DNA of 63,542 bases, the filler included, from Olpidium bornovanus S191 (Eukaryota > Fungi > Olpidiomycota), in NCBI GenBank assembly GCA_017911155.1. It is 28 parts of 28 records of this genome, joined end to end, with 100 filler letters (N's around TTAATTAATTAA, not from the genome) between each part and the next. Parts side by side here need not be neighbours in the genome. Positions count along the whole stretch, not along the records: positions 56,179 to 58,147 come from JAEFCI010005976.1; 27 more parts are not named here. One strand, given 5' to 3'. Position 1 is the stretch's first letter. Each line of letters starts with the position of its first letter. Both the position numbers and the translations under genes were made by a program. The notes under the pieces are model-generated. The model was not told the origin of the DNA. It saw nothing but the letters and a program-made list of their open reading frames with translations, and did no database searches. Shown one piece after another: positions 55,021-58,247 of the stretch.

Positions 55021-56464
55021 CGCCGTCGGTACGGGTTTTGCCGCACCAGATTCACGCAAAGCGTGTGCCTGGTCGGCCCCTTAAGACTCCAAAGGCCAAA
55101 TCTCCGGGTGGCCCCCGTTTTCGGAGGAGCGCCTGTTTTGCTCGTAAAGATGCCGGTTCGAGATAGCGGCCGGAACGCCGGGTCTCAGCCCCGTTTCACG
55201 CAACGCGTGAAAATTATTTTTTGTGAGAAATTAACGAGGAGGGAGGAGGAGGTTGGGCAACTTCGCGGCGAATTGACGAACTGCGCTGCGCAAACGTGTG
55301 GCAACCAGTGTAACATTTGGCTGGTCTGTCAGATCGCTGTTGAGCCGCCGGCACGGCCTTCGACAGCTTGGCACTGCCCGATGGGCCACTGCAAACAAAT
55401 TCGTATCCGTCCCCTGCACACCCTTTCGAACATTGGTCTCATCTACGGTGTGCTGATCCGCTGTAACATCGGCAGAGAGGGTTCTCCAAGCAGCAGAACC
55501 CCGGAGGCACGGGCCATGGACATGTTGCGATGCAATTGGTGTGGCTGACGACTACCATTGAAGTCGGTGGGCGTCACGCTCAACGGTGTGAGGCGGTCGC
55601 CGAACCCGAGAATGGCCCTTTCCGTTCGTGTCGGCGAGGACGCATTCTCGCCTCGGCTCAGGCGGCAGTTTTTAGTCCCAGAGGGACGAATCGGGAATGT
55701 GGTGGACCTCCGGCCCCGCGCAGCGGCCATAGTGCGCCTCCGCTGGCCGAGGTGGCCAAGAGTGGGGCTTTTGCGGATGGCGTACTCCAAGGATGACTGG
55801 AATTTGATGAACTCGCCAGGCTTCCGGCACTGATCGGACGGCCGGGAGTTTTGTCCGGGAGAATGCGACCGTAAACGCATTGGGAAGTGACACCATGTCA
55901 TGTCAGCGGGGCGGGGAGTACGCCGCCCTTGGCCGCTCGTAATTCTTTTCCCAGAAAAAACTCCTTCACTCCCACGACTTCCAGGGGAAAGCGTCTGAGA
56001 AAAGAGGGCAACGAGGGGTTTCGCGGGGGGTCACGAATGTCGGGTTGTGAAAATTGTATAAATCACGGCGCGTCATGANNNNNNNNNNNNNNNNNNNNNN
56101 NNNNNNNNNNNNNNNNNNNNNNTTAATTAATTAANNNNNNNNNNNNNNNNNNNNNNNNNNNNNNNNNNNNNNNNNNNNCCCCCGGGGGCCCCCCAAAAAA
56201 AAAAAAAAAAAAAAAAAATAAAGCCACCGGCTGCCCTACGCGGAGTGCCTCGTCGCCCGCACACACCACTTACTCCTGGTTTCCCGCACGCGCCACCCTC
56301 GGCAAGGACCCCTCTCTGTGTCGGTGATCTCGCGTGCGCGAACTCTTGGTGCGGGTTTGTCGGTGGCAGTGTGGAGCAGCAGATCACAAAAACTTAAGAA
56401 ACGGAAAGCGCTTTGCGCTTGCGGTGGCAAAAGTTAAAAAGGGGGGGGAATCAAAGTCGCGACT

Positions 56465-57992
56465 ATGACCAACGACCGCCTCGCGACGGCGGCCGCGCCG
56501 GCGCAAAAGAGAAAGCCCATCTCCTGGGAAAACATCGCCCTGGGCGCCTTCATCCAAGTTTTTGAGGTGACCACGCTCGGCCAGGTGTTCGAGGTCGTGA
56601 AGACGCACATGGCAGGGGCGCGGACTTTGAATACCGTTTGGCGAGTCGGCTCAGACGACCACGGCATCTGCTCGTGCGCGCAGTATTTTTTTTCCCGCCC
56701 CGTCGCACCTGTCATCTTTCCATTTTGCTCGGTTGGCACTTATCTTTTTTTCGTTTTTCTTTCTTTCTTTCTTTCCTCAACGCCACGTCGCCTGTGTTTC
56801 TACTTCTCCCCCGCCACTTCGCCACCTATTTTTCTTTCTTTCTTCCTTTTCTACCCGCCTCGTCGTACTTGTTTTTTTTTTCCCGCTCCGCCGCACCTGT
56901 TTATTTTCGTTCCGGTGTTCTGACGGAATTTTTTGGTCCGTTGTGTTCAGCGAACCGGGGAGACAACCTTGTCCAGGCGTGCAAAGCGATCCACGCGCGG
57001 GGCGGCCTGCCGGCTTTTTACCAGGGCCTGATCCCGGTGAGCGGCCCGCGCCCGCCCGTTCCTTCGCCCTCTGTTGCTTCGCCGGTCACGCACAAACCGG
57101 CTTAACGCGTCTGCCGCCTGACCTGTTTGACCGTCGCCCGCCGCCAGTGGGCGTGGATCGAGGCGTCCACGAAGGGAGGAGTCCTGCTGTTCTCGTCGTC
57201 CGAGATAGAGGGGCAGGCGCGCCGCGCTGGGGCGTCGAAGGAGGTCGCGGGCTTGCTCGGAGGGATGGGCGGAGGCGTGTGCCAGGCCTGTGAGTTCCTG
57301 GGGAGCGCAACCGCCTTGGCGGATCCGGTCTGTACAAGCGTTTGTCCCCGGGTGCGTCTCAAATGACCTTTTTCCGCCGAAAAAAACCGGCCGCGGGCGC
57401 TTTCTAGAGTGAGTGCGGCCTCGACGCGGGGGGTTTTTTTTTTAATTGGCGGGTCGTTCTTTTGAGGGCGGTTACGGACGTACGCAGGAGAGAACCACGC
57501 TGATGCTAAATAAGCATTTGTATGTTCCGCGACACTTGTCCCCCGTCCGCCGGCTCGCCGGCGCGCGCAGCCTCGGGATGGGCGTCTGCACGTTCATGAA
57601 AACCGTCGAGGTCACGCGCAAGAAGTCCGCGGGGCAGGTCAAGAGCACGTGGCAGGTGGCGGCGGAGGTCTGGAAGAAGGAGGGAATCCGCGGGCTCAAC
57701 AAGGGCGTTTCGGCCGTCGCCCTCCGGCAGATGACTAACTGGGGCTCGCGCTTCGGTAAGGCCGCGGCGCCACGGACGGCCAGTTTTTCTTTTTGTTTTC
57801 GCGGCCTTCCGCTCGACCGTTCCTCCTGATGGAGGCAGGGTGCGGGTCGCGGGGACGGAGGAACGCGCGCGCGGATACCACGGCTCACTTTTGCCGTACC
57901 CGGCTCGACCGCAGGGATCTCGCGGTTCACTGAGGGTCTGCTGAAAGGTTCCGACAAGGACCGGAAACTCAGCACCGCAGAGCGCATCGCAT
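56465..57992 (+). CDS. YHM2: Mitochondrial citrate/oxoglutarate carrier YHM2, 5' partial gene; exons 56465-56615, 56951-57036, 57148-57289, 57408 (1 nt), 57571-57755, 57915-57992
   Basis: [22 protein letters not shown]...[68 protein letters not shown] are YHM2 signatures. Confidence 0.95.
57408..57408 (+). other. YHM2: Single-nucleotide exon (A) of YHM2
   Basis: Context gcgctttctAG|A|GTGAGT. Upstream exon ends GCC T, downstream exon starts C CTC GGG ATG, so T+A+C gives Tyr and restores the frame. Confidence 0.8.
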
Positions 57993-58247
57993 GTAGGTGT
58001 CGTGTGCCCCCCCCCGGGCCCCCGACCCCCCCCCCCCCTCTTCCCTCTCCCCTCTCCGCTCCTGACGAGTGGACACCCTCCGGACCCGGTTTGCGGATTT
58101 TTTTTTTTCTCACTCGGACCCCCTGCGCGGCGGACTTCCCGGGCCGANNNNNNNNNNNNNNNNNNNNNNNNNNNNNNNNNNNNNNNNNNNNTTAATTAAT
58201 TAANNNNNNNNNNNNNNNNNNNNNNNNNNNNNNNNNNNNNNNNNNNN

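Follow-up and report, generated by a model that had tools for sequence, protein, structure and literature searches.

Introduction

A single-nucleotide exon, A333, is known from the APC11 gene of Arabidopsis thaliana, where the available text of the report gives mutagenesis and GFP reporters as proof (Guo and Liu, 2015; PMC4674806). In that text the authors proposed sequential removal of the introns, by intron definition plus recursive splicing (PMC4674806). Among fungi, a one-nucleotide exon in the Fusarium gene CYP621A has been described as the second example of its kind and the earliest from a fungus (Nelson and Syed, 2026; PMC12940212). This exon is a G in the arrangement AG/G/GT (slashes mark splice borders throughout), it provides the middle of a Gly codon and it is conserved across about 20 Fusarium orthologues (PMC12940212). 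The available part of a long-read annotation of Coprinopsis cinerea gives 13 more exons of one nucleotide (PMC12230235). The original prediction for the locus described here had named APC11 as the known example, a statement that the Fusarium gene (PMC12940212) and the Coprinopsis set (PMC12230235) have made outdated.

We have analyzed a candidate of the same kind in Olpidium bornovanus S191, a fungus that parasitizes roots. The window, that is, the whole stretch of DNA analyzed, measures 63,542 nucleotides with filler included, and all the coordinates given below count along it.

The gene and its deposited model

YHM2 is the mitochondrial citrate/oxoglutarate carrier in the SLC25 family. Comparison with homologues identifies the piece at 56179-58147 as the probable 5' two-thirds of its orthologue in O. 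bornovanus, with the following features.

56179-58147 (JAEFCI010005976.1), + strand: piece carrying the YHM2 gene; start ATG at 56465, the 3' side leaves the contig
56465..56615, + strand: exon 1; starts with ATG 56465 and ends ATG GCA G, phase 1; RNA contigs join 56615 to 56951
56616..56950, + strand: intron 1, 335 nt; GG..AG in this assembly, with the non-canonical donor G/GGGCGC
56951..57036, + strand: exon 2; from homologue reading and RNA contigs
57037..57147, + strand: intron 2, 111 nt, GTGAGC..CAG; RNA joint GT..AG
57148..57289, + strand: exon 3; ends CAG GCC T/GTGAGT, the last T being base 1 of the Tyr codon
57290..57407, + strand: sub-intron A, 118 nt, GTGAGT...CTTTCTAG; missing from mature contigs
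57362-57367, + strand: candidate branch of sub-intron A, AATGAC, 41 nt 5' of the acceptor; guessed from the motif
57408..57408, + strand: very probable one-base exon A, middle base of the Tyr codon TAC; context CTTTCTAG/A/GTGAGT
57409..57570, + strand: sub-intron B, 162 nt, GTGAGT...GCGCAG; excised alone in one X2 contig
57499-57510, + strand: candidate branches of sub-intron B, GCTGAT and GCTAAA; guessed from the motifs
57571..57755, + strand: exon 4; starts GCGCAG/C CTC GGG ATG, the first C being base 3 of the Tyr codon; contains NWGSRF
57756..57914, + strand: intron 4, 159 nt, GTAAGG..CAG; from RNA contigs
57915..57992, + strand: exon 5; from homologue reading and RNA contigs
57993..58147, + strand: start of the next intron, GTAGGT..., truncated at the contig end

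Sub-introns A and B are of normal size for this gene, whose other introns measure 111, 159 and 335 nt, and GTGAGT, found at the 5' end of both, is the best donor in it. RNA contigs extend past 57992 into sequence that lies off the piece, a loose end that begins CGTCGGTGATCGGAGG... and reads SVIGGALAC.

Searching with exon 4 gave a 100% identical stretch in KAG5459986.1, a hypothetical protein of 295 residues from O. bornovanus, whose contig of 1969 nt is the present piece. This deposited model (56465-57829) continues through three introns. It translates intron 1 at its beginning, intron 2 in full and portions of the two sub-introns, and it stops within intron 4. It is wrong at this locus and misses the one-base exon. 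While KAG5459986.1 shows 45-50% identity to its best relatives, the corrected model can be aligned with nine homologues over 175-213 residues, at 59-72% identity, which is a gain of about 20 identity points to orthologues. In their source records, several of the nine carry the name YHM2 or citrate/oxoglutarate carrier. Exon 4 alone matches the Pfam family Mito_carr with 27.6 bits (cut-off 22.3), and about two of the three carrier repeats are on the piece. Generic carriers were found at about 1e-6 versus 1e-20 for the YHM2 group, and the motif GGxxQAY..MG.CTFMKTV is common to the Olpidium model and the YHM2 homologues. The correctly spliced protein was absent from a large protein collection, in which the best non-self match was one of 50% to the deposited model.

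A reading frame that needs one more base

The original prediction placed a single-nucleotide exon inside the apparent intron between exons 3 and 4, and both its coordinates (57289, 57406-57414 and 57571) and the positions of its branch-like motifs match the sequence. The borders of exon 3 and exon 4 are both in phase 1, so that joining 57289 directly to 57571 shifts the frame, as had been claimed, and a stop is met soon afterwards. When A57408 is added, the reading frame is restored and the codon becomes TAC (Tyr). The A is found in CTAG/A/GTGAGT (57404-57414), where the acceptor AG and the donor GT are both canonical and the acceptor is preceded by ctttct. Over the 281 nt of the interval 57290-57570, AG-A-GT occurs a single time (57406-57410), and there is only one other AG-N-GT, at 57337-57341, with a C as its middle base. 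YAGAGTRAGT was present in a fraction of 6e-5, and YAGNGTRAGT in one of 7e-4, among 200,000 first-order Markov sequences with the composition of the interval.

In an alignment of the corrected model with full-length homologues, the Tyr obtained from T-A-C is invariant (108 of 108). The preceding Q is also invariant and the Ala between them is kept in 106 of the 108. Aligned in this way, the corrected model indicates that frame and length are exactly conserved. The motif given for this site in the original prediction, QAYL.MG, was close to correct: its first three residues vary little or not at all, while the consensus of the homologues is QAYTTMGFCTF, and the Olpidium residues LG just past the junction are unusually divergent from the homologues.

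The single base in RNA contigs

We compared the window with assembled contigs of two RNA sets from different studies, X1 and X2; contigs of this kind hide rare forms and their depths are rough. About one third of the sampled words of the stretch were present in 12 runs belonging to 5 studies, a proportion equal to the exon share, and eight RNA runs (X1-X8) contain the gene. The isolates from which the RNA came differ from the assembly at several sites of exon 1 and the 5' UTR. Two raw runs under the same species label, X22 (RNA) and X29 (DNA), contained no reads of this organism, and in their case the label probably refers to the plant host.

In both sets the contigs have the single letter A between 57289 and 57571, with a depth of 74.4 in X1 and of 9.2 in X2. 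The exon proposed at 57408 is therefore seen as T-A-C in the RNA of two studies. No contig of X1 or X2 joins 57289 to 57571 without the A, the kind of transcript that the original prediction had regarded as contrary to it. Altogether, we hold it very probable that A57408 is a real one-base exon of the Olpidium YHM2 gene.

Past 57289, the graph of X2 divides in two. The spliced T-A-C form makes up the first branch (60 nt, depth 9.2). The second one, of 178 nt and depth 4.6, runs continuously through 57290-57408 with zero differences from the window and then goes to 57571, skipping 162 nt with GT..AG borders, and the two branches reconverge at A+CCTCGG. The joint from 57408 to 57571 shows that the donor immediately 3' of A57408 is used with the acceptor of exon 4, in a contig with 29 letters on the exon 4 side, which is as expected for a k=31 graph and below the 31-letter rule. 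Depths are roughly additive (11.2 ahead of the fork and 15.1 past it), and the half-spliced form, in which sub-intron A is kept, accounts in X2 for about one third of the k-mer depth at this place, while it was not seen in X1. Of the two half-spliced forms that had been predicted, the one with only 57409-57570 removed is thus present in X2, and the one with only 57290-57407 removed was not seen in the contigs, which cannot show absence.

Retention of sub-intron A brings an in-frame stop (57363-57365) into this form, which therefore has to be either an intermediate or a non-productive isoform. We infer that it is an intermediate on the pathway rather than a dead-end isoform with a retained intron. 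Its steady-state abundance reflects the slow step and not the flux. Its presence in X2 and not in X1 may mean that removal of the upstream intron is slow or depends on conditions.

The first intron and the 5' end of the contig

Intron 1 is spliced precisely in both RNA sets, from 56615 to 56951. The joint itself can be written 56612 to 56948 with three ambiguous letters, and no placement starts with GT, GC or AT. The only possible borders are GG..AG, GG..CA, AG..TC and CA..TT, the best being G/GGGCGC...TTCAG/. Four relatives (L001, L002, L013 and L054) have an intron at the same phase-1 position, each of them with G/GT. For a check of the GG donor, no other contig with the reading frame of exon 1 and intron 1 was on record. 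Substitutions between RNA and assembly were found at 56278, 56279, 56448, 56506 and two more sites, all of them within 56230-56612 (383 nt), and the one at 56506 changes Gln14 to His. They are restricted to the first 440 nt of the contig, with none in the remaining 850 nt or so that were covered, a distribution that points to either a divergent haplotype or an assembly of lower quality at the 5' contig end. Given the G/GT of the relatives and the confinement of the RNA differences to the upstream part, we lean towards considering base 56617 a variant or an error of a short metagenome contig, and not part of a true GG donor.

A 30-nt T-run plus CCCGCYCCGYCGCACCTGT motif is present three times in intron 1 (56683, 56843 and 56871), which also contains CTTT repeats. 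One RNA contig is short by one T in the run at 56872.

Alternative explanations for the additional A

The A of the transcripts could have been lost from the assembly at the exon border (e.g. cag/ACCTC), in which case one intron of the ordinary kind, about 280 nt long, would be enough; the original prediction had itself raised a lost A at 57570-57571. The source is a short MEGAHIT metagenome contig (PMC7865070), and it disagrees with the RNA contigs at several sites near its 5' end, both of which would fit such a loss. However, the X2 contig that keeps 57290-57408 is equal to the window across the border of exon 3 and goes from 57408 to 57571 without any intervening letter. With an extra genomic A, either the donor of this joint would have to be other than GT or its acceptor other than AG, which is decisive against the loss. 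In addition, a perfect CTAG/A/GTGAGT would have to stand at the correct position by coincidence, with a probability of about 6e-5, and base loss outside homopolymers is rare in Illumina assemblies. We regard a base lost from the assembly as very improbable.

The differences between RNA contigs and window at 56278, 56279, 56448 and 56506 would also fit a situation in which the window copy is a frameshifted pseudogene and the mRNA with the A comes from another, intact copy. Actually, there are zero substitutions with respect to the window in exons 2-5 (about 490 nt), in sub-intron A (118 nt) and in 168 nt of intron 1, where the sole difference is the missing T in the T-run of the intron 1 contig, and the half-spliced form carries the intron sequence of this very locus up to the A. 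A second copy as the source of the mRNA is extremely improbable in our view. The A might also be added or kept in a non-canonical way, through a single splice with odd borders, template switching of the reverse transcriptase or editing, and the GG-AG border that intron 1 of the same gene has in this assembly could be quoted in support. Against this, two GT-AG introns account for both RNA forms with no special event, the junction is identical in two independent studies, and the junctions have no repeat that would favor template switching, so that we give next to no credence to a process of this type. The preferred reading is a one-base exon between two introns.

How the exon may be spliced

With A57408 as an exon, the Tyr codon TAC would be spread over three exons, the T being supplied by exon 3, the A by position 57408 and the C by exon 4, and on either side of the A there would be an ordinary U2-type GT-AG intron, 118 nt long upstream and 162 nt long downstream. 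In U2-type splicing, the U1 site consists of the last three bases of the exon and the first six of the intron, and the acceptor takes in the first base of the exon. The acceptor CTAG/A and the donor A/GTGAGT overlap physically, so they cannot be recognized simultaneously and the introns would have to be removed sequentially. Whichever of them leaves first, A57408 would then stand as a normal terminal base of a long exon. In the case of the downstream intron leaving first, a 186-nt exon would begin with the A, and the intron left upstream would be a normal one. In the case of the upstream intron leaving first, it would be the last base of a 143-nt exon before a perfect donor. Such a scheme would resemble recursive splicing with one base kept, the same model as that proposed for Arabidopsis APC11.

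We also considered a hairpin around the A (arms at 57380-57395 and 57425-57440) and rejected it, since it was no better than shuffled sequences (z -0.74 over 81 nt and -0.24 over 301 nt). An Rfam search of the piece with E up to 1 gave no RNA family.

A one-base exon and a true, accurately spliced GG-AG intron in one gene would point to a spliceosome that is unusually permissive as a trait of the Olpidium lineage. We consider this unlikely, although, if it were true, many more ultra-short exons or odd borders would be expected behind broken Olpidium gene models.

Origin of the split codon

The original prediction had suggested that the arrangement could be general in its lineage and that YHM2 of related early-diverging fungi be checked for the same AG-A-GT. 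In about 45 related YHM2 loci from metagenomes and genomes, among them Paraphysoderma and the locus closest on exon 4 (84% identity), this Tyr codon had no intron wherever it was readable. The split is therefore a derived state of the Olpidium line.

In metagenomes, YHM2 genes of other fungi carry introns 2-4 codons 3' of the same Tyr, after QAYAT or QAYATMG (loci L029, L032-L040, L044-L046, L048 and L049). The conserved helix at QAY thus appears to be a recurrent intron site. More speculatively, these downstream introns, together with the divergent LG of Olpidium, might hint at an old intron whose borders have moved. The called protein of one relative (P0006, from a Logan contig) has ten extra residues between QAYT and MGFCTF, and this insert looks like a very short intron close to the same site, of about 30 nt, that has been translated. 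An origin of the two sub-introns by tandem duplication was tried and rejected: their best local alignment was about that of shuffled sequences (p about 0.3) and other introns scored equally.

Significance and relation to known systems

The Olpidium gene provides one more RNA-supported one-base exon beside the few described gene by gene, and its natural half-spliced form bears on the open order of intron removal. The public gene model KAG5459986.1 is corrected, and phase mismatch at a conserved codon can be used as a signal for such exons. Olpidium proteins serve to place the loss of the flagellum in the fungal phylogeny, so that broken models in this assembly carry a practical cost.

The likeness to APC11, as far as the available text of that report describes it (PMC4674806), is close. 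In both genes there is a constitutive one-base exon, an A, between AG and GT within a supposed single intron, and in both it is essential to the frame and was overlooked by annotation. On the other hand, APC11 is a different gene of a plant, with flanking introns of 332 and 89 nt (PMC4674806). A half-spliced form is seen for Olpidium YHM2, whereas the available text reports none for APC11 (PMC4674806). With CYP621A the Olpidium gene shares a fungal host, a single base in the middle of the codon of a conserved residue, the clue of a phase mismatch and support from public RNA. They differ in that the Fusarium exon is a G shared by orthologues, while that of Olpidium is an A, in a zoosporic, early-diverging fungus, and was found in no related locus examined. 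The Coprinopsis catalogue indicates, in its available part, that fungal spliceosomes manage exons of 1-3 nt and that gene models break if these are omitted (PMC12230235). It is a genome-wide set from Basidiomycota, and the part of it available has no analysis of order or origin at the level of the gene and does not mention YHM2 (PMC12230235).

Recursive ratchet points and RS-exons (PMC6224609) have, like the Olpidium site, an adjoining acceptor and donor, and the first splice makes the substrate of the second. However, classical ratchet points belong to very long animal introns and leave nothing in the mRNA, whereas here the introns are short and one base is kept. The original prediction had also seen a kinship to stwintrons (PMC5587772, PMC9024468), which are similar in being spliced consecutively in fungi with signals that are bases apart. 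In a stwintron the internal intron splits a signal of the external one and nothing is retained, whereas the Olpidium introns are complete and placed side by side. Both have an intact GTGAGT and YAG in the primary transcript and the A is kept in the mRNA. Since no signal of either intron is broken up by the other one, and there is no nesting, this is not a stwintron.

Our literature search did not find an earlier one-base exon in a zoosporic, early-diverging fungus. Since exons of one base are already documented in APC11, CYP621A and Coprinopsis, no new mechanism is involved. What is new here is the host lineage, zoosporic and close to terrestrial fungi, the gene, and the presence of the half-spliced form in public data.
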